From: Bugula neritina
Lineage: Eukaryota > Animalia > Bryozoa
Direction of reading: 5' to 3'
Length of the DNA: 64,000 nucleotides
Assembly (NCBI GenBank): GCA_964035545.1
Contig: OZ037772.1
Coordinates: forward strand, 6,308,889-6,372,888
How positions within the stretch are numbered: the first letter of the stretch is position 1; the number at the start of each line of letters is the position of its first letter. Made by a program: the position numbers and the translations under genes. Below, in pieces: positions 3,001 through 52,631 of this stretch. The notes under the pieces are model-generated. The model worked only from the letters and a program-made list of their open reading frames with translations, ran no database searches and was not told where the DNA came from.

Positions 3001-4997
3001 ATTTATTTTATTATTGCTTTTTTTTAAAAAAAATAATTAGTAAAGTTTTGAACATCCCTAATAATACCACAACTATACTCCACTCCTTTAGTTGTAACCT
3101 AATTAGATTAGAAGTCACATCTTCAATACAAACAAGCTAGGCTTAGTATTTCTGATGTCTGTATACTGCTGCATTAGCTTTAAAGTTTAAACTGTAGTGA
3201 AGCTCTTACTGAATTAGTAGACTGAAAGTGCAAAACCTAGTAAGCTACCAACACTATAAATTGTTATAAGCGAGTAAAGGAAATGAACAGTATATGTGTA
3301 CAGAAACTTGTACTTAAATACACAAACACCATAGTTATGGTTATTTGGGATGCAGTTGTATTAAAAAAAAATTGTGAATTGAATACTCATTATAGACATT
3401 ACAATTTACATCATGCTGAATCGGGTTACATATTTGACTATTTAAAGCTGTTTTTATAAAATAACTTAACTAAGTTACTTATAGGTGACAAGTAATATAT
3501 AATTTAAATTCAAACCATGAGCTCATTTCAGCTAAAAATAGCAGCACCTTGTCACTGCACATGAATGGCTGGCCACTGTTTGAGCCATTAGCAAAATGGC
3601 TTACAGCTATTGCAAGCCTGCTACATGCAAGAATTATGTATCAATCAGAAATTTCTTATTCAATTGCAAGCATACCAGAATTGTAATACCATGATATAAA
3701 AAGTTGCCTACATATATAGGTGCAATGGTAGAAAAGCTTAAACAGCCTAAATTTGTCAAAAGATGCTAATTTGAGAACAGGTTGAAATTCTCTCTAAACT
3801 TTTTTTGCTGCATCTCAACATAGGGTCTAATTTATCAATATCCTCATCACTACTGCACATACCTCATACTTGGTATACTCATGCACCTGGTAATAAGATT
3901 ACTTTTAAAATAAAGTTATGCAATTACTACTCAATTGATTAAAAATTCCCTCCAACAATTTTTGTAGACTCTGAAATTTTTTAATATTTTGCATTAAGAA
4001 TACAATAAGCTTGGTTACAAATAATATATTATTAATATAATTTAGATTGCTGTACAGAACCACAAAATAATGTGCTTTGAAATCACACACAAAAGCTATA
4101 AAACTCAGTGGCTATTACCTTTCATTAGCATTATAAGGTGCTTGGGCTCTCATGCAAGCTGTATAATTACTAAACTGTTTTGGACTAAAAATATATAGGA
4201 TATAAACTATAGAGTATACACTTGAACGCCACTAGCTTGGAAGCTCTGCTTCCTAGTTAGACTTCAGAAATTGCTTCATTTTAGTACAACTAATTAATCT
4301 AGATTCAAAGTAAACTACACATTGTACAGGGTATTGGCTGTAGGCAGTACAACAACATTGCTATCATCAAGATTCCAACTACTGTAGCTACTATAATATA
4401 TTAACCAGTCTCATACCGACTAATTATTTTACTGCAAAGGTGAACTTTAACCCTTTGGTTTAGCGCGCACAACATGAATCATAGGCCGCGTGAGCTCCCT
4501 GTAATCATTATGATGGCTACGATGCAGCGCAGCTCTACCGTGTTCAGCCAAGCATGCAGACTAAGTGAGAAGCAAAGTTTCTAATAAAATCAGTGTATAA
4601 ATTACATGTTTACACTTATTCTATTGAAGCTATGCAGAAAATTTGAAAAGGTTCCAATAGACAAATATCTTATCACGCCATAGGTCAATTTTCACAAAGA
4701 TATATCAATTAGGGATTGAATTATTTTTTGGGCACTGAGACCATGTTTTTTTGAGCAAAAATGGGCAAAATTTGGTAGTTTTTGGGGCATAAAAGTGCAA
4801 CAGATGACATAAATGAAAGTTTTAAAAAAGGTTCCAATAGAGCAGCAAGAGATATACAACATAGTTTTTGAATTTTGTTTCTAGACTCAAAATTGATTGA
4901 GTTATGAGTTGGGCACTGTTTCATATATAATTATAATGGAGCAATGAAATTACTGATTCAGTAGAAGGATGACCTTAATCAAGCTGTGTTGGTATAG

Positions 4998-6004
4998 GTG
5001 TTTCAAAGAAGAATGGATGGTTCAGTTGATTTCTACAGAAACTGGTACAGCTACAAACTGGGTTTTGGTAATTTGAATGGAGAGTTCTGGCTTGGAAATG
5101 ACAAGTTGGTAGCTGCTCTGCAAGCCAATTCTAAGAATGAGTTGAGATTTGATCTTGAAAGTACAACCAATGTACAAGCTTTTGCTGAATACAGCAGCTT
5201 CAATGTTGGTGATGTGTCTACTGGATATACTCTCTCAGTTTCTGGCTATACTGGGACAGCAGGTATGGATTTCAAACTCAGGATGCAAATCTCTGATCAA
5301 TGCCACCATTGCTATTGAGAAAGTAATGCTCTATCCTGTAGTTCATATATATACATAAATGTTACTAAACTGTCATTGAAAAAGTTTGATTAAAATATGT
5401 TTGTTGCAATAAACGGTTTTGAGGTATCATTTAGTTGCAATATATCAACTTTGTGTCAACGCTCCTATATATGATATATAACACATTACTTTATAGATAA
5501 GAAATTTTTGTTATAATTTGCTATTAAATTGTAAATAAATTGTTGCAAGATATTGATTGAGAAGTAATATTATTCTCCCAACTATAATAGTAATTTAGTT
5601 TACATTGAAACATTTCACACTAGGAAGCTACTCAAAGCCTATAGGCTAATATTCAACATTTATAGAAAATCTAAATATAAATTTTAATGAGTGATTGGTG
5701 GTGTTATTCACTCTGTGAAAGTAAGCTTTTGTACAAATGAAGGATTGAATTTTTAGGAGACAGTTTTGCTGCTAATCATAATGGCTTCAAGTTTTCAACA
5801 GCTGATAGAGACTATTCAAGCTCGTGTGCATTGAAATATGTTGGTGCTTGGTGGTATGGAGAAACCTGTCACCATTCTAACTTGAATGGCAAGTACCTGA
5901 ATGGCACTCATACTTCTTTTGCTGATGGTGTAAACTGGAAAACCTGGAAGGGATACCATAATTCTCTGAAGACCACAGAGATGAAATTCCGTGGATATTT
6001 GTAA
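4998..6004 (+). CDS. FReD/ficolin-like gene copy A, partial (exons 3-4 only: 4998-5262, 5757-6004)
   Basis: ag|GTG TTT CAA AGA AGA ATG GAT GGT encodes [29 protein letters not shown]; phase-1 intron gt 5263..ag 5756; last exon [55 protein letters not shown], open to TAA at 6002-6004. No exon 1 or 2 seen in 1-4997. Confidence 0.85.
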
Positions 6005-6553
6005 TTCCCCAAAGTTTGAATAATAGCAAAGCTCAAGCATTGTCATTCATAATTATATGACATAAACTTATTATTTTACTTGTTCATAAATGAATTAAAT
6101 TTTTTTTGTAAAATTGATGCGCCAAAATGTTGTCTGTGTGGCACTTTTGGGTAACATATCTTAAAAAAATAAATTACAAAGTAAACCAGAGGTGTAGTCA
6201 GTTTTAAAATTTACAAATTTAAACGTAAATAAAAGGTTTAAGAGTTGGTTTAGTAAACATAAACATTACAAATTTTTGTCCCAAAAGCCTTGCATGCAGT
6301 TCATCAAAATTGTAGTTTTCCTGCAAAATTTAATAATTAAGTGCTACAACTCTATGCTTATAACATATGTGCTTCTTTTGTCGGATCTTCTGAAAAACTT
6401 TCAGACCGTAACTATTAGATGTTGGAATGCTTATATACACAATGATATATGTATTAAATACATATCCAAAATTTAAACAGAAACAAAAAGAACACAATTA
6501 TTTATATTTAAGCAACAACATTTACTATATAACAGCATAAATAAATATATAGG

Positions 6554-6557
<4 letters not shown>

Positions 6558-6638
<81 letters not shown>
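6558..6638. repeat. (TA)n microsatellite
   Basis: Directly visible pure TA run. Confidence 0.97.
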
Positions 6639-6644
<6 letters not shown>

Positions 6645-7525
6645 GTCAAGCGCCTATCGTGAAAAAATGTGTAATAACCACCACACTTTTCGTGAACTTG
6701 AAAATTTAAAATTTTTCTAACAATCTGACATGAAATAAACTGATATTTACTATACAAAAAACTTTTTCAAAAAAAATACGATCAGACAGAAAAAACAGAA
6801 AATACACAATCATAGTAATGTTGTCAGAACTGATGCTTAGTGGGTTCTTTTGAAGTAAGATTACAAAACTTCTGTATGTTTCATGAAAAAAGTTTTTTAC
6901 ATATAGACAGAATTATAAATTTAACAATTAATGCAGTCAAATCTAATAAGCTGTATGAAGGACTTCTATTCGCTAATAGAAACTCTAGCACTGAACTTAG
7001 CTTAAGACCTTTGCTCATTCCCAAATAAATAGCTGCACTGTCTGCTTATATAACCAGCTGTTTTTCTGTTGAAGCTACAAAGTACTGATGGCCTTACAGA
7101 AAGCTGTAGCTTGTGAAACAACTTTGAGCTAACATATATTATGGTAGAATAACTCTATAAGCTGTGCAAAGTTGGGGATGGTTAAGTGGAGTAGTTTTAG
7201 GTTCAGGTTTGAAGTTGGAGGCATAAGTTAGAACTTTAAACCTCCACAGCAAATTCAAGATTTCCAAGCTATACTGCACTCAGTCACCCTACCTGAGACC
7301 TGCTAGATAAGATCAACATGGCACTGCCACATGAAGTCTAAATTGAAAAAAAATATGTGTTAGGAGTTACCTGCTCAATTTAATAGATTGACTGGGAGGA
7401 CAATACTGGAAAAGCCAATTGTACTCAGCCAGGATTTCACTAGTCCCTACATAATATATGTATATATTATATATTATATATATATATGTATATAGTAGAA
7501 GAAGTAAAAATGAGATTTGATTAAT

Positions 7526-7596
7526 ATAATGGCATTTATTACTAGTAGTTTCGTACACAAGAACGATGTGCACTCGTCAGATAAATTAGCCACTAT
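7526..7596 (-). ncRNA. Minimal type I hammerhead ribozyme (minus-strand arm of the palindrome)
   Basis: Reverse complement reads atagtggc-ta-atttat CTGACGA gtgcaca-tcgttct-tgtgtac GAAA ctactag TA ataaat-gccattat. Confidence 0.85.
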
Positions 7597-7665
7597 AGTG
7601 GCTAATTTATCTGATGAGTGCACATCGTTCTTGTGTACGAAACTACTAGTAATAAATGCCATTAT
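7595..7665 (+). ncRNA. Minimal type I hammerhead ribozyme
   Basis: Stem I atagtggc(ta)atttat / ataaatgccattat; core CTGATGA 7611-7617; stem II GTGCACA/TGTGTAC; GAAA 7639-7642; short stem III ACT-act-AGT; cleavage triplet GTA 7649-7651. Confidence 0.88.
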
Positions 7666-7756
7666 ATTAATCAAATCTCATTTTATTTCTTCTAATGTTT
7701 ATGCTCTAGATTTATTTCTATAGAGCACTCAAGTAACGTTTTATAAACACTCATTT

Positions 7757-7880
<124 letters not shown>

Positions 7881-8992
7881 TTTTTCTATTATGATATCTT
7901 GTGTTATATATTACAGTTATTTTATTGAAAAGAGTGTTTATAGATGCAGCGGATAAACATAAAAATCACACAGCACAATCTTCAAAATTGAGAATGAATT
8001 TGACTGAAACAAAGTTCTACAGATATAGTTTATTCACCATCAATCAAATATACAACAATATTATTAGTATAAAAGTAAAAGTTCCTTAAATATTAAGTAA
8101 TTTATACCTTATATATAGACTAAAATGAAACTAATTAATTTAAATGTCATCTACATTAATTTTATTCAATTTTTCAAATAGTTTATACACAAACGAACAT
8201 ACAAAATGCATGGTAATTATTGATTAATCAATTACAGAAAAGTGTATAGTTAAAAACTACTATATTATTTTACAGCAGATATAATGTAACCATACGCAAT
8301 GCTATAAGATAGTAACTCTGTGTTTATTTCATAAGACATATTTGTTTAAAAAGTTTGTTTAAAAAGATAAAACAGCTCAACAACTATCAGCAGGGAGTTG
8401 ACACAGCTTGATATTTCTCTTTTTAAATAGCATTAAAATTATTCATAATTTATGCCCTGTGAGCCGTTTCACTGGATTTGGTGATAAACAGCTTTTCACA
8501 GTTAAGAAACATTGTGAGTAATTGATTATAGCATTAATTTATTTTGTAAACATTTGATTTAAAATAGTTGCATTAATCCAAAACTGAAACATTGTTTAAT
8601 GTATTACAGTATATACCGAAGAAGTTACTATTTCAAAAAGAATATAAATACATGTGCTAGTTTACACTACATGTCAGAGGTCAGAGGTCAGAGGGCAGGC
8701 AACACTAATGCTCTTTTTTATAATATTATGAGAAAGACATTAGGTTATGCTGGAAAATGTGAACTGTTACTTCTTACAACTACTGACTAAAGAGTTGAGG
8801 GCTAAGGGAGTTGTCTACTCTGCTGCTGTACTATACAAGCAAACAATAGATGTTGTAGTCAGTTTTATTTGTGAAATAGTCAATAGGTCAATTAAACTTT
8901 CCAGATCAATGTTCAGTGTATACTGATATACAACACAGACAGAGGCACATGCATACACACAATACAATCTTACAATTTTATTGATGTTTTAG

Positions 8993-10713
8993 TTCACTCT
9001 GCTCTAGAATGTATGACTCAGTGCAGTGATCTCCACATTCAGTGTCTGTCTGGTATCTTTGAATCAGCAAACAGAACTTGTAGACTATTCAATGAACCTT
9101 TAGTAGAGCTGGAAGCAGAAAACTTAAAAGATATGGTTTACTTCATGAAGATATCTTCAGTGACAAGTAAAAATATACTTGTTCCTTAAATCCCAAATTG
9201 TAGCAACCCTTTTCATTCAAAAGATGATGCTTATAATTATAGTAACTTTAAATCACAATTTGTGCAGTAAATAAAACCTATTGGGAGTTGAACTACTTAA
9301 AAGTGAAAAAATTGTGGGCATCAATGTAGAATGTAACGTAGCTGCTTTCCAATTAGTTTTAGTCAATATTGGCAGCTTTTAATGGTTTTAGGTGAGAATA
9401 TTTTTCTAGGCCAGAACTTTTCTGATGTGCTAAAACATTACCAACAGAGAATCACTTCTAGTCCTGAGTTCTGTCTGTCTCTCTCTTTGCTCCTGTAACC
9501 AATCATGTGTTGCTGTGTTATATGACAAGAATACATCAACCTGTTTCCTGTCTGATAAACCAGAAGTTATCATCAACACTTGGGCCCCGCTCCTTGAATA
9601 GCTATGCTACTGAGCACATGGGCCCCCATCTTGACTTCGATTAATATTATATATAAATTGAATTTAGCTCTTTTTGTGTTACTGTTTTGTATTTTTTTTG
9701 TCTTTTTTTTGTGATGGAAATAAAGAAACAAACAAACAAACAAACAAACAAAGAGCAGACTAGCAGACTGTGTTCTGTTAAAAAGAAACACTCTGAAGAC
9801 TTGACTGTCTATAGTTTCTCTACCAATCTTGCTAAAGGTAAAAATAGCCAGTTGGTAATGCTATTTTGAGTTATGAGCTTTTTGAACATATATCAAGACT
9901 AAAAATAATGCTACAAAGTCAGTAAATTAGGTTAATCACATATGTGACATTATACCACAATACTTTACATGATGTCATATAAGCTTTAAAGAGTATTCAC
10001 TCTTTATATTGTATAAGCCTTGTAATTCATGTTATTCTGGTAAATTTTAGATAAAGTTGCTACATCAAGCAGCATATATGGAGCAAACTTGTCAGGGTTG
10101 AAAGCTATTGATGGCATTTATCTTCCCTCGGAAGCTGGCTTAGGAGAGCAAGGAAGTTTATTTGCTACTAATCAAGAATTGTCTCCGTGGCTGCAAGTAG
10201 ACTTAACCACTAGTCACTTTGTTGAAGGTGTCAAAATATGGGACAGATCTGAGCACAGTTTTCAAGGTCAGTGAATTGTTTGTGCATCTTTTGTATAATA
10301 TTGATATTTTATCTATTGCAATGGTGTCTGAACAGATTAGTGGTAAGTTATTTGTATTTAATGGTTATATACATAGATGTTTGTAATAGTATACTCGTAA
10401 TATTTTTACCTTCTCAAGGTTAAATTCAAGTCAATACAAAACTAGTTTTCAAATTTATAGATTACAATGATCGACTAGCTAATGTGAGAGTAGCAGTTAG
10501 TGAAACTGACACAAACTTTGATGATCCACCAGAAGATGAGATCTGTAATAACTTCCTGGACAACCACCTGCAGATATATTTCTGGTTACATGTCGTACTA
10601 GAATGTATGGTAGATACGTGAGAGTAACAGCTATTGAAGTAAATGAGCTTCTTAATATCTATGAGTTAGAAATTCATGGGTTAGAAATTGTTGAACAGCC
10701 AGCTAACGACTAA
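8993..10713 (+). pseudogene. PAN-PAN-F-type lectin gene copy P1 (exons 8993-9166, 9392-9837, 10051-10266, 10461-10713); signal-peptide exon absent
   Basis: Encodes ECMTQCSDLHIQCLSGIFESANRTCRL (PAN), CVAVLYDKNTSTCFL (PAN), NLAKDKVATSSSIY..AIDG..PWLQVDL..WDRSE and MYGRYVRV..IYELEIHG (F-type lectin fold). Lesions: 4-nt insertion near 9485, 172-bp insertion 9580-9751, 1-nt deletion near 10550. Confidence 0.85.
9580..9751 (+). mobile_element. 5'-truncated non-LTR retroelement 3' end (CR1/L2-like) inserted in P1 exon 3
   Basis: Interrupts atcaacac|agagcagac, which is contiguous in the paralog at ~31757; ends in AATAAA followed by an (AAAC)n tail; no clear TSD. Confidence 0.7.
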
Positions 10714-10770
10714 TGTGATACAATGTTATATGACAAACAAAACTCTGGCCAGCTACTACCATATGCCCGA

Positions 10771-10798
10771 GAGAGAGAGAGTGTGTGTGTGTGTGTTT

Positions 10799-10846
<48 letters not shown>

Positions 10847-10934
10847 GCGTGTGCGTGTGCGTGTGCGTGTGCGTGTGCGTGTGCGTGTGCGTGTGCGTGT
10901 GCGTGTGCGTGTGCGTGTGCGTGTGCGTGTGCGT

Positions 10935-11019
<85 letters not shown>
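10771..11019. repeat. Compound (GA)n/(GT)n/(GTGTGC)n microsatellite just 3' of P1
   Basis: Directly visible; explains the spurious VC/HT-repeat ORFs. Confidence 0.97.
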
Positions 11020-11021
<2 letters not shown>

Positions 11022-12384
11022 AAATTATATATAAGCATTACAGCTACAATGTATAGCAACATCATCTAATACATGCACACAAACAAATGATATGTGATAT
11101 AGTTATTGCAGTAGGAAGAAAGTCTGCATGTAAAATTAATGTTTCATGAAGTAGTACAAACAGCTGTTGTGACTTTGTGTTATTAAAGCTAGAATATATT
11201 GTGCCATTTAATTATTTGTTATTGTTTAATTTTATTAGGTAGACTTTGATAGTTTGATCAGATCAATAGTTTCAAAACAAATTCATAAAAGTAGGCTGAG
11301 TCATTAAACACATCTTATGAATAGTAACTTGGCCCTATAGTGTTACACACAACATAGATGCTAAATTTTATATAATTTTCATTCATAATATTTTAGTGAA
11401 TAGCATTTAAATACTATAACTTCTGTGTTGTTTTTGGCACCATTTTCTATTCTTTATTTAATTTTTAGCTTTTTTTCTTTTTTATGATACAGTTTATTTA
11501 TTATCAGTTTAACTTCATTGTAAAGTCTTCAGTCATATAACTTTATAAAATTTACTATCCTTTATAATAAAGAGTTTTTGTTGTTCTATAATTTATATGT
11601 TTTTATTGTCGCAGACTGAAAGAAAAGAGTAAAGTAATAAGAGATAAGTAATATGATATAAGTGAATGAATAACAGAAAATTATTGGTTTGTATACTAGT
11701 CTTATAAAAAGTAGCTATTCTGTGGTAGCCAAACTCATTGTATCACAATAGAAAAGACATAAGCTATGCTAATACGAGTAAAGTTGTAATTATTCAACAA
11801 GCTTCCAAGTTCATCTAATGGCGCCAACAGTTTTAATAAACATCACACTCTTCATGAATTAATTAGTTAGAAATTTATCTAACAATCTAACATCAACTTA
11901 GCATACGTAATATAGAATAAAACTTTCAAAAATAAAATTAAGTTCATCACTTAAAAACAGTAAAGACACACAATCACAATGATATTGTAGGAGCTGACAT
12001 GCATTTGCTAATTTTTTAAAATATCTCTAGTCTTTAGAAACACTCTTTGTGTATGTTTATGAGAATCTCTTAATTATGTATATAACAGAACTGAAGTAAT
12101 AATAATAGAAGTGCAGACATACAGTGGCATGGATGAGGAGCATCTTTTATAAAATATGCTCCACTTGCACGCATCTCTATGTTTTAATTAGTCAAATCCA
12201 CGTCAGCACTGAATTCAACTGAAAACCTTAACTTATAGTCCCAAGTGGATAGCTGCATTGATTGATTGCTCTCACCAGCTGTTTGTCTATTGAAGCTGCA
12301 GAGTAGTGGATGTCTTATGGCAAACCGTTATAAACTGTGAACAGTTTATAATAGCGTTGAGCTACCATAGTAGACTTATTCTGT

Positions 12385-20527: not shown

Positions 20528-21303
20528 ATGCATATGTATTTCCTCCTTATACTTTTGTTGGCAGTCCCTCTGCATGCAGTAAGTATACAAAAACTTCTAC
20601 TATAAGAACAATGATGTATACAGTAAAGAGTGAATTATTATATTGTTGTGTTATATGAATCATCATATTGAGCTTACAAACTACGCGTGTTTTATACTTA
20701 GTAAACAAGAATAGTTTTTATTTGAATAATTCAGCAAAATTTAATAAAGACTTTACTTGAGAGTAGAATTCTTTATAAAGATTTGCTAAAATGTTTTACT
20801 GACTTTTAGAGCTTACGTATTTTTTTAAAAACGCTTTAAAAAAAGAAATAAATTTATTATCATTCAGATATTTTTTAATTTATAGTAATTCCCTCTCAAC
20901 AAATTACCAACATGGTAATTTTCTATTATGCAACATTTAATTGCCATAAATAGTTTTAGACAGCATTGCTATTGGCTTTGTATGCTCCAGCTATTATATT
21001 CTCACTTCTTTGCATCCTGGACTTATTGAACATCGACAAAGTGCTAATTGTGCTAAATTTACAGGGCTAATATTATATTCAAATAAAATAATATCTAACC
21101 AGTGTTCCAATAACTACTAGATACAATACTGTAGGACATTGTGTTTGTAGCACCGTGATGTAGAGGAATATTGTTTGGAGAGAATAAAGACAAAACCATA
21201 TGACAAACCCAGAACATGTTTAGACCACAGAGATGAAATTCCGTGGATATTTTTAATTTCCAAAGTTTATATAATAGCAAAGCTTAAGCATTGTCGTTTA
21301 TAA
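20528..21303 (+). pseudogene. FReD copy C with internal deletion (exon 1 20528-20578; exon 2 from 21151 fused to the end of exon 4)
   Basis: MHMYFLLILLLAVPLHA|gt..ag|[25 protein letters not shown], then jumps at AGACC (21222-21226) into acagagatgaaattccgtggata from the exon-4 tail, out of frame; stop at 21301-21303. Confidence 0.9.
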
Positions 21304-23712
21304 TTAGACATAAACTTATCATTTTACTTGTTCATATAAAATAAATTACATTTTTTGTAAAATTAATGCGCCAAAATATTGTCTGTGTGGCACTTTTGGG
21401 TAATATATCTTATAATACTAAATTACAAAATAAACCAGAGATGTATAATCAATTTTAAAATCTACAAATGTAAACGTAAATACAAGGTTTTAGAGTTGGT
21501 TTAGTAAACATAAACATTACAATTTTTTGTCCCAAAAGCCTTGCATGCTGTTTATCAAAATTGTAGAGCTTTCCTGCAAAATTTTGCATAACCCGCATTG
21601 TTACAGATTGGATGGTGAAATTTATTAAGCGAGTGCTACAAATCTATGCTTATAACATATGTACTTGTTTTGTCGGGTTTTTTGTAAAACTTTCATACCG
21701 TAACTATTACATACGTAACATTGTAACAAAAAATTACAAGATGTTGGAGTGCTCATACACAATGATATATACAGGATATACATATCCAAAAATTAGACAC
21801 AAACAACAAGAATATATTTATATTCAAGCCACAACATTTACTATAACAGCATAAATGAATATATAGTCTACATATATAAATAGCAACTTGGTTATTAATA
21901 TATTATAATACAGCCTATAATACTCAAATACATAATAGACTACAGTTAATGTAAATATAATATAGACTCTACAAACAGTGACTCATCAACCTGCATCCTG
22001 ATAGAGATAGTATATAGGCACTTAAATACCAAGTTAGATCTGAGCTGTTCATATTTAAAAATATGTTAAATCAGTTGTAACAGGCTTCTGCCAATCTAAG
22101 TTTTAGTGTAATGACAGAAAATGTATCTTAAAGTATTTCACCAGCTTTTTATGTTAGTAAATCAACATTCATTGTTTTATTTGCTTAGAAACAAATTACA
22201 GCTTTTGTATAAGAATCAAACATCAAAATTATTTTTGTTTTATATTTTTGGGCAAGATTATGTATGTTAACTGTTTACTATAAACCAAACAAGAAGGTAG
22301 TTTGTTGCAAACTTTAAACAAATGCACGTCTAACTGAAAGTGATTACATGAAGCCTTCAACTTGCAAACATAAACTTTAAAACGTTTTGTATTGAAAACA
22401 GTTACATACGTGTTGTCATTACACTAAAAGACCAAGTGTGATATTGGCCTATTATATATAGGTGCAAGCTTTAAAGCTAAATTAGCAGATACCTCTAGCA
22501 ACTGCTCCAATATCTTTTCAATGGGCCTTATTTAATTTGGTATTGAAGTACCTAATATTATATTGCCTATGTATGAGGACCCATGCAAGGTGGCGTGTCA
22601 CTATTTATTGTGCACAGGCTAGTCATATAATTTTAGGCAATTTAATAACAAATTAAATAAAGATCATTGAAAACATATTGGAGCAGTTGTAACAAATTTC
22701 TGCTATTTTAGCTTTTAATCTTAAAATTTAAACTTGTTGTTTAGTGGAATAGATGAGATGCAGATTTAGTTGTTAATATAATAAATTTATATGCATGTTA
22801 GCTTGCGTTTTAACCATTTTATAGAAATATCAGTTTTACTATAGCAGCCATCTTAAACTTGAATATGGAAGCATGCAAATGAGAGAAGATTAAATTGCAC
22901 TCAATAAAATGGAAGGTATGTATTTGTATTAGCATTCAAAAAACCAAATTTTCAAATGAACAAGAAAAGTTTAGAGATAAAATAGATAACATCTGAACAC
23001 AAAGGATTTGATGTTCAAAATGTAAGCTGTGTGCTAGATGTGAACATAATTATATTTGGAATGTTATATAGAACTTAGTATTCACTAACATAATCATGGC
23101 TGCTTGGATTTCGATTGAACTCCTTTCAATGGCCCGTCTGGGTCACAAATTTGCTTTGAATTAAACCTATAAATGCTATCTATTGTGATTATATATCTCT
23201 ACATTCTTTCCTAAGCTGAGACCTCATCACTGCTGACTTTTTCAACTCGCAATTTATCTAACAATCGCCTTAAGAAATCACAATTTTGTAATCTATTTTA
23301 ATGCATGCAAGTAAAAGAAGATGAAATCTGCACTTAAAAAGATGCAAGATACTTTTATTAAGGTCTGAAAAGCTAAATACCAGCACATGAACTTAGAAAA
23401 AAAATGACTAAGCAAAGATCAAATAGATAATATATATGGAAACAAATGAATTGAGGTCAACAAATGATAGCACTATGCTGTGAACATATTATATACATGA
23501 GTTTGAAAAGTCATTGAAATACTAAATATTTTAATGTTAGACAACAGCAAAGCAGACTCTTGACTTGGCAGTTTGATAATGGATATATTTTACTGAAATA
23601 AAACAAGACTATATTTATTTGCACGATATCAAAACTTGCCGGTTATACTTACAGAATAATAGATATAAGAATATATTATATAATATAGTTGTGTTATAAT
23701 GGTATATGTATA

Positions 23713-24564: not shown

Positions 24565-24650
24565 CTGTCTTGCTTTTGCGCCTGAATCTGACTCACTAGT
24601 ATTTGTGTACACGTCACAATAGTTGAGTATATGCCAGTCTATTCGGTTTT

Positions 24651-24699
24651 ATTGTGCTACTAATAGTTTCATGCCTCTTCGGCACTCCTCAAGCACAAT
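24651..24699 (-). ncRNA. Variant minimal type I hammerhead ribozyme (C3U), second sequence family
   Basis: Reverse complement: ATTGTGC TTGAGGA GTGCC-gaaga-GGCAT GAAA ctattag TA GCACAAT, overlapping an AATAAA at its 3' end. Confidence 0.65.
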
Positions 24700-25408
24700 A
24701 TTGACAAATTTAAATTTTTACATTAAGAAAATCAACATGTTAAACACAAGGTAAAACGTAACGAACACATAGCAGTGGCTGTGTTGTATAGGTTTGTAGG
24801 TGTAAATTAATATATAAAAAAACATAATGTAATGTAAAAACACAATTTATAGCAGATGCATGGAGTTTTTGTTGAGTGACTATTCTATATGGGTATTTGT
24901 ATATTATTTACTATAGTACTTAAAATATAAATGCCTGTCAATTAAGGCCATTGGGAAAAGCATCCAGTCATGATTGCTCCTGCAGTGCCTTATCTAAACG
25001 AGTTCTTAGCCTGATTTAACAAAAATATTTTCTTTCAGGATTTTGCACAGGGATAGTGAATATAAACTTGCGCGAGTATTTTATTATGGTATTTGTAATG
25101 ATGTGTGACAAGATGGTGCTGAATTGCAATACTTTACATTGTGGATTTATTTGGTACAACTACTGAGAATATAAAATGATAACACTGTGGAATCTAGCAA
25201 CTAACTAACTTTTTAGTTTATAATAACTACACAAGCATTATATGTAAATGCTGACTTTGACAATAATAAGGAACTGCTTGATGCACATATAAGTCATTGA
25301 TCTACTAAAACTATAAAGCTATATATAGTAACATCTGAACTCTATTTGCCAATATAACAATTCGCAACAAGCATGCATTTAGCTGTGGAAGTATATATAG
25401 AGAGTACA

Positions 25409-28997: not shown

Positions 28998-30248
28998 CTG
29001 TACATAGTTTAATATTTCAAATATATTATAGAGAACAAAAACATATCTGCACTTTATAGACCACATTAGCACATTCAAACCTTCACCACTAACTAAATGA
29101 AAATATGCTACAGTATATTTCCATTTATAGATTACAGTAAAGTTGAATACAGAATCTAGTAAATATTTGCACTGAAAAAACTAGACTTAATTCATTGTAA
29201 AAATTATCAAATAGAATGATCAAAAGGCATTATAACTTATTTGAATAAAAACTTGCCTTAATCAGATAATTTATGCTATTCACAAGGGAATAATGCTAAT
29301 AATATAGTGCTGGTATATATTGAAACAAATGACAACACATAAACCATTACACAAGTAGATAGCTGTTCTAATATTTTGCTCTAGCTAAGTCTTTTAGCAA
29401 ACATGAAGCTACTTTTAGCATGCATACTGTTGATGTCTGAATTTTCATCAATTTCAGCCTTGAATTTGACAGAAGAATATTATTGTACACAGCATATATC
29501 AGCATTCAACAGCTCAGAATCTCAGCTACAGGAGTCTACCCTTCAAGATTCCAGACAAGGTAAATATCTTTTACGTTGTATTAGGTCATCGAGCTAAAAT
29601 TAAAGTAGGTGAGAATTGAAAAGGTAAATGTATGTCATAAATTATTTTACCCTAATCATCAGTGGTTATAAAGGAGTTCACAGGGTTCGATTGGCTACAA
29701 TTAATATGTTCTGTTTGCAATTTTCTCAATGCTACAGAGAGGAATTACTAGAATGAGTTTTTTTATTATGAGATCTTGTGTTATATATTAGTTATTTCAT
29801 TGAAATGAGGGTTTGTAAATGCAGTGGACAAACATAAAAATCACACAGCACAATCTTCAGAAATGAGCATGAATTTGACTGAAACAAAGTTGTACATACA
29901 CAGTTTATTTGACAAGAAATGAAATGAACAATAATAATAGTATAAAAAAAGAACTCCTCTGATACTGAATATTTTAAACCTTATGTGAACTAAAACAACA
30001 TTAATTAAAAAAAACACGTAATGATTTTATTTAGTTTTTAAAATTATTTATACACAAGAAAACTAACAAAATGCATAGTATTTAATTGCCGGATTTTGGA
30101 AAAAATAGCATAATTTTTAGCGGATATACTGTAAGCATACACAATACTATCTGATTGCAATTGTGCATATATTTATAATAACACAAGCTTGTTTAAAAAA
30201 GATAAAACAGCTAAAACAACCACTAGCACTTGACACAGTTACACTATT

Positions 30249-30898
30249 TGTAGAAATTCAGAGACTCTGGAAATGAAGTTCACTGATGATGTATTACTAT
30301 TAAATTTATTATTTTAAACACCAACGTGAAGTCTAAAAGATAGACAACACTGGTAAAACTTAATTGACAACAAAACTTATATATACAGAACAAAAACTTA
30401 TGTTAATAACATTGATAATATCTATAACTAAAACTGATATAAATTGATGGCATTTATTACTAAAAACAATTTAATCTATTCAAGTACTCAAATTGACAAG
30501 ATATTCGAATTATTTTATAAGAAAAAACATACCTTTAGTTCTCTTTAATCTCGTGAAATGCTAACTATTTGTGTAACTTTAAAATGAATATAACTATCTG
30601 TTTGATTGATTGATTGATTGATAAATACAAATGTCTATTAAAATACAACTTTATAATGACTGATTGTCATCTACTGCTCTATTACTGCCGGTGACTCGAT
30701 TACTTTGCTGCGCGCGAGTTACAAAAACAAAAAGTGCGGGAAATCATCAGACCGAGTCAACTAAGCCAATCAAATCGCACCGGACCTGGATGCAATGTCA
30801 CCGCAACCAAAATAACCGCAGCACTGCACAGCGGGTCAGCCAATTATAAAATACACTGTAATGCAAGGTGTTATTGACAGTTGCTTCAATTGTTTACA
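30249..30898. mobile_element. Solo LTR (650 bp) with 5-bp TSD CTATT in P2 intron 1
   Basis: TGTA...TACA termini; CTATT at 30244-30248 and 30899-30903; absent from the homologous P1 intron (~8400). Confidence 0.8.
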
Positions 30899-32290
30899 CT
30901 ATTCATTATAAGGCTAGCATTGATATTTCTCTGTGCAAATAACTTTAAAATCATTTATTATTAATGCCCAGAGAGCTTTTTTACTGGACTTGTTGATAAA
31001 CAAGTTTGCACCGTAGAAAATTTGCTATAAAAGCTATACTATCTACAATAGTTTGGAAATAATTGACTAAAAGTAGGGGCATTAATCTAAAACCGAAACA
31101 TATATATATATTTATATATGTATAAATATACACTATTTACATATATATACACTATTTACATATATATACACTATTTACATATGTAACTTTATTGATTTTA
31201 GCTCGATCTAGTCTAGACTGTATGACTCAATGCAATGATCTCCACAGTCAGTGTCAGTCTGGTGTCTTTGAATCAGCAAACAGAATTTGTAGACTATTCA
31301 ATGAACCTTTAGTAGAGCTGGTAGAAGGAAACTTAAAGAAGATGTTCTATTTCGAGAAGCTATCTTTACTGACAAGTAAACATCATTCTTCTTCAAATCC
31401 CAAATTAAAATAACTTCTTTCATTTATAAAAATCAATGCTAGTAACTTTAAACATGATGTGTGCAGATTTTAAAATCTATTAGGACTTTAACTAATTAAA
31501 AGTGAAATAATTGGGTGTAATGATAGAATATAGGGTTTTCAAATTGATTTTGGCTGATACTGACAGTCTTTTAATTTTAGGAGAGAATATTTTCTTGGAC
31601 AAAGCATTTTCTGATGTGACAACACATTACCAGCAGAGAATCACTTCTAGTCCTGAGTTCTGTCTGTCTCTCTGCTCCTGTAACCAGTCATGTGTTGCTG
31701 TGTCATATGACAAGAATACATCAACCTGTTTCCTGTCTGATAAACCAGAAGTGATAATCAACACAGAGCAGACTAGTAGACTGTGTTCTGTTAAGAAGAT
31801 CTACTCAGAAGAGTTGGTTGTCTATAGCTTCTCTACCAATCTTGCTAAAGGTAAAGATAGCCAAATGCTAATTCTAACACTTATGCGACAAAGTCAGTAA
31901 ATTAGGTTAATGACATATGCGACATTATACCACAATACTTTACATGATATTATTAAAGTTTAGAAAGTCCTAGCTCTTTATATTGTAAAAGTCCTGTAAT
32001 TCATGTTGTTCTGGTAACTTTTAGATAAAGTTGCTTCATCAAGCAGCATATATAGATCCGATTTCTCAGAGGTCAAGGCTATTGATGGAATTTATCTTCC
32101 CTCTGAATCTGGGATAGGGGAGCAAGAAAGCCTTTTTGTTACAAGTCAAGAACTGTCTCCATGGCTGCAAATAGACTTAACCATCAGTCACTTTGTTGAT
32201 GGTGTCAAAATATGAGACAGATCTGAAAGTAATCAAGGTGATTTAGTTTACATATTCGGGCAGCTGTTGTGTTGTGACGTTTTATATAAA

Positions 32291-32501
32291 TTGCAGAAGT
32301 TTATAGTTGCCATCTCTGTGAGAAACCTTGATGGAAGAGGGTAATATTTTGTTTATTCGGGCTAAGAATTTATTCAGATGAGGCACGGAAGCAATTATGA
32401 CTGGATGCTCTCCCTAACATCACCAATGGCTTTTGTTGGGTTCGAACCCATGACACTGTGTCTATTAAGCAAATGCTCTAACCCCTTGACCAAAGCTGCC
32501 C
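32291..32501 (-). mobile_element. tRNA-derived SINE in P2 intron 4 (best-preserved copy)
   Basis: Reverse complement has A box TGGTCAAGGGG and B box GGTTCGAACCC, then the family core gttagggagagcatccagtcataattgc. Confidence 0.8.
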
Positions 32502-33223
32502 TGTTATAATGTTTTATCTGTTGCTGACAAACTACTATATTCTTGTAATTTCTGTGTATTTAGTGGTAATCTGAATGTTTACAGTATATATTGTATGCTA
32601 TTTAAACATAGTCAAATGGTAGTGTTTTAAGTTAAATATTTAAGCTTTTTGCTGACATCTTATTATGTCAATTGACATTTTAGCTGTAAATGACCTGTTG
32701 GCAAATGTGAGAGTAACAGTTGGTGCAAGTTTTTAGTAAGCACAAAGTCTGTAGTGCTAACACACTTTATTCCAACATGCTACCAAGTTCTCTAGATAAA
32801 AAGTCTTATCATATTTCTGCATTAAAACAATGTAAAACAGCATACAGCCAACATTCTGCTCTGGTTGTTTAATAAGAATTATTTGAAAGAAGGAAAACTT
32901 TTTTACAGAGAACAATGACAGGCTGGCTAATGTGAGAGTAACAGTTGGTGAAACTGACACCAACTTTGATGATTCACCACAAGATGAAATCTGTGATTAC
33001 TTTCCTGGACAACCGCCAGCAGATATATTTCTGGTTACATGTCATACTAGAATGTATGGTAGATACGTGAGAGTAACAGCTGTAGAAGTGAATGAGATTT
33101 TTAATATCTATGAGTTGGAAATTTACGGACTAGAGATTATGTTGATATTTATGCTATAGACTAATGTCATTCACATTCAGTTGCCAAAATACTGGCCCAT
33201 AATTGTAAACCCTTGCATGCATA

Positions 33224-33398
33224 TGTGTGTGTGCTGTGTGTGTTGTGTGCATGTGTGTGTGTTTGCGTGTGCGTGCATGTGTGTGCGTGTGCGTGTGTGT
33301 TCTGTGTTTGCGTGTGAGTGTGCGTGTGCGTGTTTGTGTGCGTGCGTGTGTGTGCATGTGTGTGTGTGTGTGTGTGTATGTGTGTGTGCGTGTGCGTG

Positions 33399-33449
<51 letters not shown>

Positions 33450-33454
33450 GCGTG

Positions 33455-33510
<56 letters not shown>

Positions 33511-33543
33511 TGCGTGTGTGTGTGTGTGTGTGTGCGTGCGTGC

Positions 33544-33594
<51 letters not shown>
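33224..33594. repeat. Compound (GT)n/(GTGC)n microsatellite just 3' of P2
   Basis: Directly visible. Confidence 0.97.
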
Positions 33595-33596
<2 letters not shown>

Positions 33597-36500
33597 GATA
33601 TTCAAATTTAATTATAAGCGTTAGAGCCAAGTTGTTGTAGCAACATCACCCAATGTATGCATTCAAACAAATTATAGGATAGTTAATGCAGTATGGGAAT
33701 AGTTGAATCAATAAAACTTTGAACTGAACAGTCAGTAAAATAAATATTTTATTATACGGTATAGACACCTGTTGTGACTCTGTGTTATTACAGCTTCAAT
33801 ATATTGTGCCATTTGTTAATTGCTGTTGTTTATATTTATTAGGTAGACTGTGGTAATTTGGTCAAACAAATAGTTTCAAAACATCCATAAAAGTTATAGG
33901 CTCTTGGTCTAAGTAGAAATCTGGCCATTGACTATTATACAAACTACATATGACAAAATTTACATTGCATTCTATACATTTTTGCTTCATAATACTTTTG
34001 CAGATATATAGCATTGAAATACTATGTAGCCTGCTGTGTTGTTTTTGGGGCCATATTTTAATCTCTATGCTTTTGTTTTTTTTTATCAAACAGTTTAGTT
34101 ATCACCAGTTCAACTTCGTTGTAAACTCATCAGTCACGCTGTAGTAAAATATACTATCAATTATGATAAATGTGTTTAATAACTATAATACCACAATTTT
34201 TATGAGTTTATTAGTTATCAATTTTATTTAACAATCTGACATAAACTTAGCAGATGTAATAAACAATTACAGTATTCAGAAATATAAGTAAGTTAAGCAC
34301 TTGAAAAAAGTGGCGAGATACAGTCACAATGTTGTTATCGGAACTGTGTATTGGCTTTTTTCTAAATATATTGAAAACAATTTTTGTACATGAGTTTTTT
34401 TGAAAAAAATTTAGTGTTTAAATTTTTGTTCTTTACTAACACATTTTGCATATATTTTATAAAAAACTCTCAACACACAGCGGAGCTGAAGCAATAGTTA
34501 TAAACGTGCAGACATTGGCTGCTTGAGAAGCATCATTTAGTTAATCGATTCCACAGCACGCACTGAACTCAACTGATGACATTAACTTAGTCCCTTGTGA
34601 TTCGCTGCACTGATTTCTCTTTCCAGCTATTTGTTTATTGAACCTTTAAAGTAGTGATTGCCTTGTGACAAACTGTAGCCTGTGGTTAGTGTAAAACAGC
34701 ATTGAGCTAACATAGTAGACTCATTCTGTAAGCAGCTCTCAGTTGGAGTGACCGAGTGCAGTAGTTTTGGGTTATTGAGTTTGGAGTTGAGGGTTTAGGT
34801 AGGATCTTTGAATCCCTAACTTCAAACTTGAGACCTCAAGCTACTTACTCAGTCACCCCTAACATGGAGCTGCTTTAAGAAACTTGTAACATATAAGCTC
34901 TTATGTAAGATGGGACTACTGCTGTAAAACAACATTGTGGTACAATAGTTGTCTCACATAGAATCTAATTTCAAACCCTGTATTGGGAGTTATGTCCCCA
35001 TTTAATACATTAGCAGATACAACACTGAAGAGACTAATTGTATTTGGCCATGGTTTAACTGTCTCATATATTAAATCACTTGATTATTTCCATATAGTGT
35101 ACAGTGTTCAGGCTAAAGAGTATGCAGCCAAAAGAGAAAACATCTTTATACTAATAATTTAAAAAGCTGTTCACATATATGAAAGCATATTCGACAAGAC
35201 ATGTGATGAAATAGCAAAGGTATGAGATATAGCTCAAAGTTGATGGCTTATAATTAATGGTAGATGTCATAATAAAACTATTAGATATTTACTTGTTAGC
35301 CTAGGGTCATTAGTCTAGTTGACAAATCTAAAGACGAAGCAGCCAATGAATTTGAATCTAGCACCAAGAGAAGCTTGAGGCCACCCCACTTTTCAATTCA
35401 TGCTAACATCAAAGCAGTCATGGTGCTTTTATAAATATTGCGTATTTGAGTATATACTAACTGAATTGCTTTTACTGAACACAAGTGGTTTGCATTCTTG
35501 AGCATTGAATATACGAATATACGAATGATATGAAATAAGTAATAAGAGATAAGTGAATGAATAACCGAAAATTATGAGTTTATATACCAGTCTAAAAAAT
35601 AGCTATTATATGTGGTAGACAAACTCATTGTATCACAATAGAAAAGACATAAGCTATGCTAATACGAGTAAAGTTGTAATTATTCAACAAGCTTTTCAAG
35701 TTCATCTAATGGCGGCCAACAGTTTTAATAACCATCACACTCTTCATGAATTAATTAGTTAGAATTTTATCTAACAATCTAACATCTACTTAGCATACCT
35801 AATATAGAATAAAATTTTCAAAAATAAAATTAAGTTCATCACTTAAAAACAGTAAAGACACACAATCACAGTGATGTCATAGGAACTGGTGCATTTGCTA
35901 ACTTTTTAAAACAAATTATAAACAATTTTTGTGAATAGTTCTTTTACTAAATTTAGTACAAATATCTCTAGTCTTTAAAAACATTCTTTGCTTATATTTT
36001 TTATAAGAATCTCTTTATTCTGTAACAGAACTGAAGTAACAGTTATGGGAGTGCAAACTTTTATAAATTTTTTTATAAAATATGCTCCTCTTGCATGCAG
36101 CTATATGTTATAGTTGGTCAAATTCACATCAGCACTGAATTCAACTGAAAACCTTAACTTATAGTCCCAAGTGAATAGCTGCACTGATTGATTGCTCTCC
36201 CCAGCTGTGTGTTTGTCTATTGAACCTGCAGAGTAGTGGTTGTCTTGTGACAAGCTGTTATAACCTGTGATTAGTGTAAAACAGCTTTGGGCTAAAATAT
36301 TATACTTGTTCTATAAGCAGCTCCAAGTTGGAAGTTACTGCATGAGTGCAGTAGTTTGGGTTTATTGAGTTTAGAGTCGAGGGTCTAAGCAAAAACTTTG
36401 AATCTCCAACTTCAACCTTGAGACCTCAAACTATTTACTCAGTCACCCCCAACACGGAGCTGCTTTAAGAAATTTTTAACATATAAGTTCTTATGTAACA

Positions 36501-52225: not shown

Positions 52226-52300
<75 letters not shown>

Positions 52301-52440
52301 GACAGAGTAGTAAATTTCTACTCAAGAATGCTGTAACATAGCCAATTACTTCCAATACTACCTCTTTGTTATATTTTGATCTTCTATAGCTTTATTCTGT
52401 GTATATTTACATATTACATTATTTATTGTTGTAAGCAATC

Positions 52441-52511
52441 ATAGTGGCAAATTTATCTGACGAGTGCACATCATTTTTGTGTACGAAACTACTAGTAATA
52501 AATGTCATTAT
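52441..52511 (+). ncRNA. Minimal type I hammerhead ribozyme, same family as 7595-7665, within a ~240-bp insert (52298-52540) between two (TA)n runs
   Basis: atagtggc-aa-atttat CTGACGA gtgcaca-tcatttt-tgtgtac GAAA ctactag TA ataaat-gtcattat; differences from the 7595 copy fall in the bulge, the loop, N7, or give a G-U pair. Confidence 0.88.
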
Positions 52512-52535
52512 AATAATCAAATCTCATTTTATTTC

Positions 52536-52631
<96 letters not shown>

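Follow-up and report, generated by a model that had tools for sequence, protein, structure and literature searches.

The window, the stretch of 64,000 nucleotides of the Bugula neritina genome analysed here, carries at positions 7496-7759 an insertion of 264 bp with TA microsatellite on both sides. We consider it very probable that this is a dead-on-arrival insertion of a Penelope-like element (PLE) of the Hydra clade in (TA)n, composed of two head-to-head copies of the element's 3' end, of which one is tailed and each carries its own hammerhead ribozyme motif. A preliminary description of the same DNA had drawn attention to a palindrome of about 200 bp at this site, and the analysis confirmed it at 7496-7694, with zero spacer and a hammerhead core on each strand. 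An inverted-repeat scan delimits two arms of 89 nt each (7507-7595 and 7596-7684) that are 99% complementary; beyond them the homology reaches 7496 on the left and 7694 on the right, interrupted in the left arm by one substitution and one extra base close to its outer end, and identity over 200 nt amounts to 97%. Within the central 89 bp the arms differ only at N7 of the ribozyme core, as had been noticed before: position 7615 is T on the plus strand (CUGAUGA), and position 7576 is G, which reads as C on the minus strand (CUGACGA). Folded as RNA, the 199 nt of 7496-7694 form one hairpin of -155.7 kcal/mol (z = -31.6 against shuffled sequences).

The insertion begins where an imperfect TA-rich microsatellite, the left remnant of the target (7447-7495), abuts the element. 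The left arm (7496-7595, minus strand) is an inverted, 5'-truncated PLE 3' end that runs from arm position 99 to 1 without a tail, includes the minus-strand hammerhead (7527-7595; core CUGACGA, the complement of 7574-7580) and is 95% identical to the family unit, other copies of which likewise end directly in (TA)n. The right arm (7596-7694, plus strand) is a sense, 5'-truncated PLE 3' end spanning arm positions 1-99, with the plus-strand hammerhead at 7596-7664. Each arm thus comprises about 99 nt, beginning at the 5' edge of the element's hammerhead, and contains a SpeI site (ACTAGT). Past the right arm the insertion continues for another 65 nt, absent from the preliminary description, which form the PLE tail (7695-7759, plus strand) on this side only and are followed by the right part of the (TA)n target (7760-7877), interrupted by GGG at 7802-7804.

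Both arms contain every core position of a complete type I hammerhead, as had been claimed, namely C3 U4 G5 A6 N7 G8 A9, G12 A13 A14, the pair A15.1-U16.1 and H17, with helix II closed by G10.1-C11.1 and GUA as the cleavage triplet. In the plus-strand motif, helix I pairs 7596-7610 with 7652-7664 around a UA bulge in its 5' strand; the long bulged helix described earlier is therefore there, though not at the stated 14 bp, since 6 bp, the 2-nt bulge and 7 bp give 13 bp. The core CUGAUGA (7611-7617) leads into helix II, which has 7 bp and a 7-nt loop (7618-7624 with 7632-7638), GAA follows at 7639-7641 (GAAA to 7642), and helix III counts 2-3 bp in all, including A15.1-U16.1 at 7642/7650 and a C-G pair at 7643/7649. 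The triplet GUA ends at 7651 (arm position 56), after which cleavage is predicted; on the minus strand, C3 lies at 7580 and A17 at 7540, with the predicted cut between 7540 and 7539. The short helix III is set within an 8-nt self-complementary stretch, UACUAGUA (7644-7651). For an isolated arm, the hammerhead fold is predicted at -14.5 kcal/mol and the minimum free energy fold at -16.5 kcal/mol, a gap of 2 kcal/mol, and two sense copies of the arm are predicted to pair with each other (-42.4 versus 2 x -16.5 kcal/mol). Together, the weak helix III, the 8-nt palindrome and the predicted sense-sense pairing fit the dimer model of PLE hammerheads.

These motifs resemble the PLE hammerheads described by Cervera & De la Pena in 2014 (PMC4209133) in being type I, lying in a pseudo-long terminal repeat (pseudo-LTR), having a long helix II of 7 bp and placing a very short helix III in a palindromic stretch, a setting that points to dimeric action. 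That study reported dual hammerheads 100-700 bp apart on opposite strands, along with many solo motifs from truncated PLEs, whereas the motifs in the window stand back to back with zero spacer. They also differ from the minimal hammerheads of that work (PMC4209133), whose helix I has 4-5 bp, by a bulged helix I of 13 bp.

Two lines of support for the hammerhead come from covariance models and from related elements in the same genome. A local model (R1) scored 69.1 bits on the minus-strand arm and 70 bits on the plus-strand arm. A second model, R2, was built from three other PLE families only, leaving out the family in the window, and served as a control because the covariation alignment described below was model-guided and leans towards the structure. 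On the 64-kb window R2 gave exactly four matches, among them both arms (plus strand, 28.4 bits, E 3.5e-5; minus strand, 27.6 bits, E 6e-5), the other two being a further copy of the window's family (52451-52513) and a motif from a sister family (24642-24706). The seven PLE families that we found in the genome have a common hammerhead core with differing helix sequences and compensatory changes. When 20 distinct sequences from these seven families were aligned, 86.9% of the cells paired, compared with 16-52% when the partners were slid; helix I showed compensatory changes in five of its six pairs, with up to four pair types per position, and the covariation score of 0.414, against 0.157 in shuffles, was reached in none of 500 shuffled alignments. 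In addition, CUGANGA...GAAA occurs in sense in the 3' regions of 19 out of 20 sister-family copies and almost never in antisense. The sense position in sister families, the covariation and the R2 matches, taken together, indicate that the hammerhead motif is a conserved part of these PLEs.

The two further R2 sites are themselves PLE remnants. At 52294-52542 (plus strand), followed by (TA)n to about 52629, lies a second copy of the window's PLE family, a 5'-truncated 3' end of 249 nt comprising the end of the open reading frame (ORF), the 3' untranslated region (UTR) and an arm with a CUGACGA hammerhead; it is single and tail-less, about 92% identical to the unit, and looks older than the palindrome. 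The site at 24642-24706 (minus strand) is a related PLE remnant, with a hammerhead of sister family B in which C3 is changed to U (UUGAGGA), located after a family B 3' UTR.

Searching the 216-Mb assembly with the arm returned at least 53 copies with 93-100% identity, many of them as inverted pairs 0-2.9 kb apart, and a 35-nt segment of the ribozyme was counted 261 times while the reversed control gave 0, which makes at least 261 hammerhead copies for this family (family A). Insertions of the family always lie in (TA)n, and beyond the outer end of the arm the copies show either (TA)n at once or a conserved 65-nt stretch, the tail, and then (TA)n. The longer inverted pairs enclose coding sequence. 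In full copies the order is arm and 65-nt tail, about 22 nt, an ORF of 714 codons, about 100 nt, and arm and tail again, with a unit of 2,428 bp; the upstream tail ends about 22 nt ahead of the ORF, and the hammerhead lies in the sense strand about 100 nt past the ORF stop, inside the pseudo-LTR. Arm and tail therefore form a direct terminal repeat in full copies and an inverted repeat in others, examples being the tandem copies at loci L047 and L048 and the head-to-head copies at L049 and L031. The preliminary description had suspected a PLE remnant from the ribozymes, had named inverted terminal copies as a PLE habit and had pointed to copies adjacent to ORFs for reverse transcriptase (RT) and GIY-YIG nuclease. 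All three find support in the family: arm and tail flank an RT and GIY-YIG ORF as direct pseudo-LTRs in its full copies, copies beside such ORFs occur both as full copies and as longer pairs, and inverted 5'-truncated copies, the (TA)n target and the one-sided tail are all found in it. With copies of 97-100% identity and several unbroken 714-codon frames, the family looks recently active.

Several arrangements within the family deserve mention. At L048 the upstream pseudo-LTR (2384-2547) is about 95% identical to arm and tail and the downstream one (4813-4975) about 99% in the arm, and the two repeats may stem from different events. Three loci (L003, L018 and L025, at C1:16876352, C4:11444363 and C3:18975056) have an inverted tail fragment of about 40 nt, from the tail end to its internal hairpin, joined straight to a full arm with a slightly different junction at each locus, and solo arms at L023 and L024 have the same start position. 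Nesting is seen in G000:C2:29065900-29067650 (L082, L083), where at least three head-to-head pairs of the family sit in each other's TA tracts within 1.7 kb, and at L064, where a family A palindrome is inserted in the terminal TA tract of a family F element.

Two positions of the unit are polymorphic CpG/TpG sites among the copies, N7 (arm position 20; 7615/7576) and tail position 8 (7702): at N7 the copies mostly have C, with T in a few, and the tail reads TACGCT or TATGCT. The copy in the window reads T at both CpG sites, on one and the same strand, pointing to CpG decay and hence to cytosine methylation in this genome. Ordinary CpG decay accounts for the N7 difference between the arms as well as tolerance at N7 does. 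We also considered the mixed C/T at N7 as proof of two templates and found it not decisive, given that it is a CpG site, that the tail CpG behaves alike and that one palindrome is T/T.

Elements that combine a telomerase-like RT with a C-terminal GIY-YIG nuclease are defined as endonuclease-positive (EN+) PLEs. The AlphaFold model of the ORF protein, based on 38 homologues (predicted local distance difference test, pLDDT, 90.2), had telomerase RTs as its best Foldseek matches (6zdq, 3du5, 7lma, 7trd; E about 1e-9), followed by other RTs. When the C-terminal 150 aa were modelled alone, they matched I-TevI with Z 8.6 and a root-mean-square deviation of 2.3 A over 89 of 92 residues, and also T4 EndoII (Z 7.5) and UvrC (Z about 6), the top 12 rows being all GIY-YIG. 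A telomerase-like RT fold followed by a C-terminal GIY-YIG fold identifies the ORF, at the level of structural models, as that of an EN+ PLE. Within the EN+ PLEs, the Hydra clade has been characterised by a CxCX5C linker, the lack of CCHH, CxxC and CxH near the C-terminus, YRDD, a change of DKG to DKT and an N-terminal RWK (Craig, Yushenova, Rodriguez & Arkhipova 2021, PMC8557442). In the window family we found the CxCX5C linker (CNCRNVKTC), a CxxC (CQLC) and a CxH (CRH) near the C-terminus, while CCHH is absent, there being no Cys pair in the GIY-YIG domain and no Cys from IVYQ to YIG; the Cys columns are invariant in the 38 homologues, as is YRDD. Sister families in the genome with 45-52% identity have RWK, DKT and YRDD, DKT being found in families B, C, D and E and RWK or RWR in three. 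The window family thus shares with Hydra-clade PLEs a size below 3 kb, a single ORF, a C-terminal GIY-YIG without CCHH, the CxCX5C, CxxC and CxH motifs, insertion in (TA)n, a canonical hammerhead and an aquatic invertebrate host (PMC8557442), and we regard it as a new PLE family in a new host, from a known clade.

More than 2,500 homologues of the ORF protein are found in public data, with about 700 aa, nearly all unnamed and on contigs of about 2.3-2.8 kb. Thousands of homologous public proteins are without RT annotation, because Pfam RVT_1 misses this clade even though its fold is telomerase-like. The bivalve Solemya velum and the bryozoan Watersipora subatra supply the nearest homologues with a name, unannotated proteins in both cases. 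Among the listed homologues of the frame L047:2632-4752:+ (P0001-P0120), apart from a GIY-YIG label in one of them, the only labels are HTH_animal (PF26215) and DUF8422 (PF28514).

How often the element takes the form seen in the window was assessed in a census of head-to-head pairs among the first 100 listed hammerhead cores of family A. Of 33 such pairs (for example L072-L091), 18 have 20-47 nt between the cores (40 nt in the window), none has a gap of 48-274 nt, and the other 15 are spread over 275-2,910 nt, making the distribution bimodal. Among the 25 minimal palindromes of family A, a count that takes in the copy in the window and L064, which is nested beside another element, 24 have the tail on exactly one side and (TA)n on the other, and the single exception adjoins another element. 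Sister family B, which has a different ribozyme, shows the one-sided tail in 14 out of 14 loci (for example L097-L110), bringing both families to 38/39. The centres of the family A palindromes comprise at least 14 junction types among the 25 loci, some keeping 1-8 extra native upstream bases. In both families the centres coincide with native motifs that are self-complementary and overlap by 0-8 nt, such as AATT in family A and CAATATTG in family B; the overlap in the window is AT, of 2 nt. The inner ends gather in both families at the 5' border of helix I, which differs in length between them. On this comparison, the palindrome in the window is the minimal head-to-head form of a PLE insertion.

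Much of this architecture has precedents. Known features of PLEs are direct or inverted pseudo-LTRs, copies in partial tandem, a neighbouring inverted copy with a 5' truncation, a tail of 30-40 bp at one end only and (TA)n targets, and Hydra and other canonical PLEs carry a hammerhead (PMC8557442); pseudo-LTR hammerheads, inverted truncated copies, the tail, TA targeting and neighbouring hammerheads on opposite strands are therefore already published (PMC8557442, PMC4209133). The tail of the window family is longer, with 65 nt compared with the 30-40 nt quoted for PLEs generally. Animal non-LTR retrozymes are likewise short, non-coding, hammerhead-bearing derivatives of PLE pseudo-LTRs, yet they are direct tandem repeats giving unit-length circularisable RNAs, and an inverted pair such as that in the window cannot be so processed (10.64898/2026.07.22.740005). 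What may be new is quantitative, namely a discrete and frequent minimal class, inner ends at the 5' edge of helix I and a strictly one-sided tail. In the retrotransposon L1, twin priming lets both nicked strands prime RT, with the complementary DNAs (cDNAs) joined by microhomology to yield an inversion within one insertion. Unlike the palindrome in the window, in which the same 3' end is present twice, such events copy two different parts of the RNA, produce no palindrome and do not duplicate the 3' end.

A further parallel is the Poseidon PLE of Anolis carolinensis, PAc, whose purified protein cleaves and extends both strands of an AT-rich target in vitro and initiates reverse transcription at two internal sites on the RNA that are as far apart as the genomic tail is long, with the hammerhead being dispensable for insertion (Frangieh et al. 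2024, PMC11167929). The arms of the window family fit this behaviour, ending at the arm/tail border on one side and at the tail end on the other, although PAc belongs to a different clade and has its start sites inside the ORF and its hammerhead overlapping the start codon (PMC11167929), whereas in the window family, as far as the genome sequence tells, start sites and hammerhead alike are placed after the ORF stop and ahead of the next ORF. In a corresponding scheme, the endonuclease would nick both strands of the TA target, RT would be primed on each strand at one of the two internal RNA start sites, arm end or tail end, and the 3' end of one short cDNA would switch to the other at a few self-complementary bases, AT/TA at the centre of the window palindrome, leaving symmetric arms and a tail on one side only. 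For the copy in the window we infer that two short cDNAs, started on opposite strands from the arm end and from the tail end respectively, were joined by such a switch. The one-sided tails (38/39), the symmetric arms meeting at self-complementary microhomology and the bimodal lengths are the genomic counterpart of the two-strand extension from two internal start sites seen in vitro. How PLEs finish integration and what purpose the hammerhead serves are questions still open in the cited papers, and an apparently young Hydra-clade family that preserves every junction is a clean example that could guide work on both.

We tentatively go one step further and suggest, as a possibility with the odds still against it, that the minimal palindromes are an in vivo record of a dimeric ribonucleoprotein that primes both nicked strands of a single TA target at two start sites, with the switch after about 70-130 nt, at a short self-complementary motif immediately upstream of the hammerhead. 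If this is true, the cluster of inner ends would mark either a fixed 5' end of the RNA, set by a transcription start or by an end at the base of the ribozyme that resists decay, or a preferred switch point, and the hammerhead would have a structural role in retrotransposition other than cleavage. Run-off of cDNA at the ribozyme cleavage site was considered and rejected: arms starting at position 57 are not overrepresented, no pairs are joined there, and genomic copies ending at the cleavage site are not in excess (293 outer segments versus 261 cores). That the arm start is the transcription start is unsupported, as the upstream pseudo-LTRs of two tandem full copies continue into 3' UTR sequence; a TATA-like TATTTATAG some 22 nt ahead of the arm start counts for little in a genome with 31% GC.

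Several observations weigh against reading the insertion as a Hydra-clade PLE formed in this way. Scanning the whole window with Rfam at the gathering score gave no match, and the lack of a covariance-model match, which the preliminary description had named as part of a refuting outcome, applies with Rfam Hammerhead_1 (RF00163) to one of the two arms: in a permissive scan the minus-strand arm reached 28.3 bits (E 5.5e-5), under the cut-off of 34 bits, and it was the single strand reported, the plus-strand arm being missing from the output. Rfam recovers one of the 20 sister-family motifs, which indicates that RF00163 is poorly suited to PLE variants with a short helix III. On the protein side, Pfam gave no RT family for six ORFs (RVT_1 without match) and a sub-threshold match to GIY-YIG (PF01541, E 0.011), and a profile search against PDB sequences returned no relevant match. 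The assignment to the Hydra clade comes from motifs that we read against the published description, from which family A departs in having DKS and RWA in place of the DKT and RWK that its sister families do have (PMC8557442). Lastly, the joining of two cDNAs is deduced from junction anatomy, and similar products could come from a self-primed (snap-back) second strand or from a master that was already a palindrome when it was copied.

The last of these, in which the minimal palindrome replicates as a non-autonomous unit reverse-transcribed whole from a palindromic master, would make a discrete class of minimal forms (18/33 pairs, none with a gap of 48-274 nt) easy to understand, and junction types do recur at unrelated loci (31-nt five times, 38-nt four times, 40-nt three times, 20-nt twice), with the same C3-to-T change in both arms of L079 and T/T at N7 in one copy. 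We nevertheless find it unlikely, since at least 14 junction types among 25 loci, with 1-8 extra native bases beyond what a shorter master could supply, and junctions on native self-complementary motifs (such as that of family B) are what repeated new joining predicts; solo arms and arms with a tail fragment share the same start without any palindrome (L023, L024, L003, L018, L025), and an RNA hairpin of -145 kcal/mol is a poor template. A perfect palindrome with zero spacer is also the typical signature of a fold-back chimera in a long read, copied into the contig, yet the flanks are not mirrored, with the 65-nt tail on one side and different unique DNA on each, the site is internal to a 13-Mb contig, one base differs between the arms, and the asymmetric architecture recurs with varied junctions at no fewer than 25 loci of family A and 14 of family B, on different contigs, which makes an assembly artefact very improbable. 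Even less credit, close to none, goes to a miniature inverted-repeat transposable element (MITE), a foldback element or a Helentron-like DNA transposon whose terminal repeats happen to resemble hammerheads. Terminal inverted repeats of about 99 nt enclosing 0-2.9 kb, TA-rich targets compatible with a TA duplication and one end with a subterminal repeat and a hairpin-containing extension, as in Helentrons, would all suit such an element; however, the sequence enclosed encodes RT and GIY-YIG, neither a transposase nor a Rep/helicase, partial copies in tandem have the repeat in direct orientation too, as pseudo-LTRs, the arms, being 5'-truncated retro-copies, vary in length and the hammerhead covaries across families with little common sequence. 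As far as sequence can tell, the internal ORF and the direct-repeat copies refute the MITE/Helentron reading.

What RNA from this locus would do was assessed by folding. A transcript of 7504-7694 is predicted to form a hairpin of -145.1 kcal/mol, about 96 kcal/mol better than the best fold that keeps a hammerhead (-49.2 kcal/mol). With the ribozymes on opposite strands, there is no cis dimer of the kind that the weak helix III calls for, and each transcript would contain one sense and one antisense ribozyme with the hairpin favoured, so that the cleavage of read-through RNA in either direction proposed in the preliminary description is unlikely. Its other suggestion, double-stranded RNA (dsRNA), is plausible on these models, in which the transcript folds as a hairpin and not as an active ribozyme. 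Hairpins of this stability (-155.7 kcal/mol for 7496-7694), at dozens of loci in the genome and from a family that was apparently recently active (97-100% identity, intact 714-codon frames), might suggest that the host has coopted them, with read-through dsRNA of 89 bp being diced into small RNAs against the active PLE family. We regard this as improbable, because the structure is fully accounted for as a by-product of insertion and nothing points to conservation above the neutral level, private mutations being present in the copy in the window. The locus probably does nothing now.

The preliminary description had also linked the palindrome to the loss of exon 1 from the neighbouring gene that it called P1. 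Positions 7876-11996 are paralogous to 29753-35888, and the homology indeed starts at 7876-7878, right after the TA tract. In the paralogue, an exon-like stretch with a GT donor ends about 190 nt upstream of the homology start and has no counterpart by the palindrome, from which it follows that something upstream is missing in the palindrome-side copy. The adjacency of the homology start and the TA tract stands; the causal link is unsupported, TA on both sides being the picture expected of a clean insertion. The simplest reading would be an insertion into a microsatellite already present at the breakpoint, because the TA repeat flanks the element on both sides and the family targets (TA)n everywhere. 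The locus itself is a commonplace transposon remnant flanked by lectin-type genes, with no indication of a host function. At 21.9-29.7 kb, about 6.5 kb lies between the paralogous blocks for which the interval of 6.6-7.9 kb offers no counterpart. Tandemly duplicated gene segments with 72-92% identity are formed by 6009-6567 with 21260-21882 and by 7876-11996 with 29753-35888, and further upstream, at 4998-5318 on the plus strand, lies an exon-like ORF with the signature of a fibrinogen-related domain.

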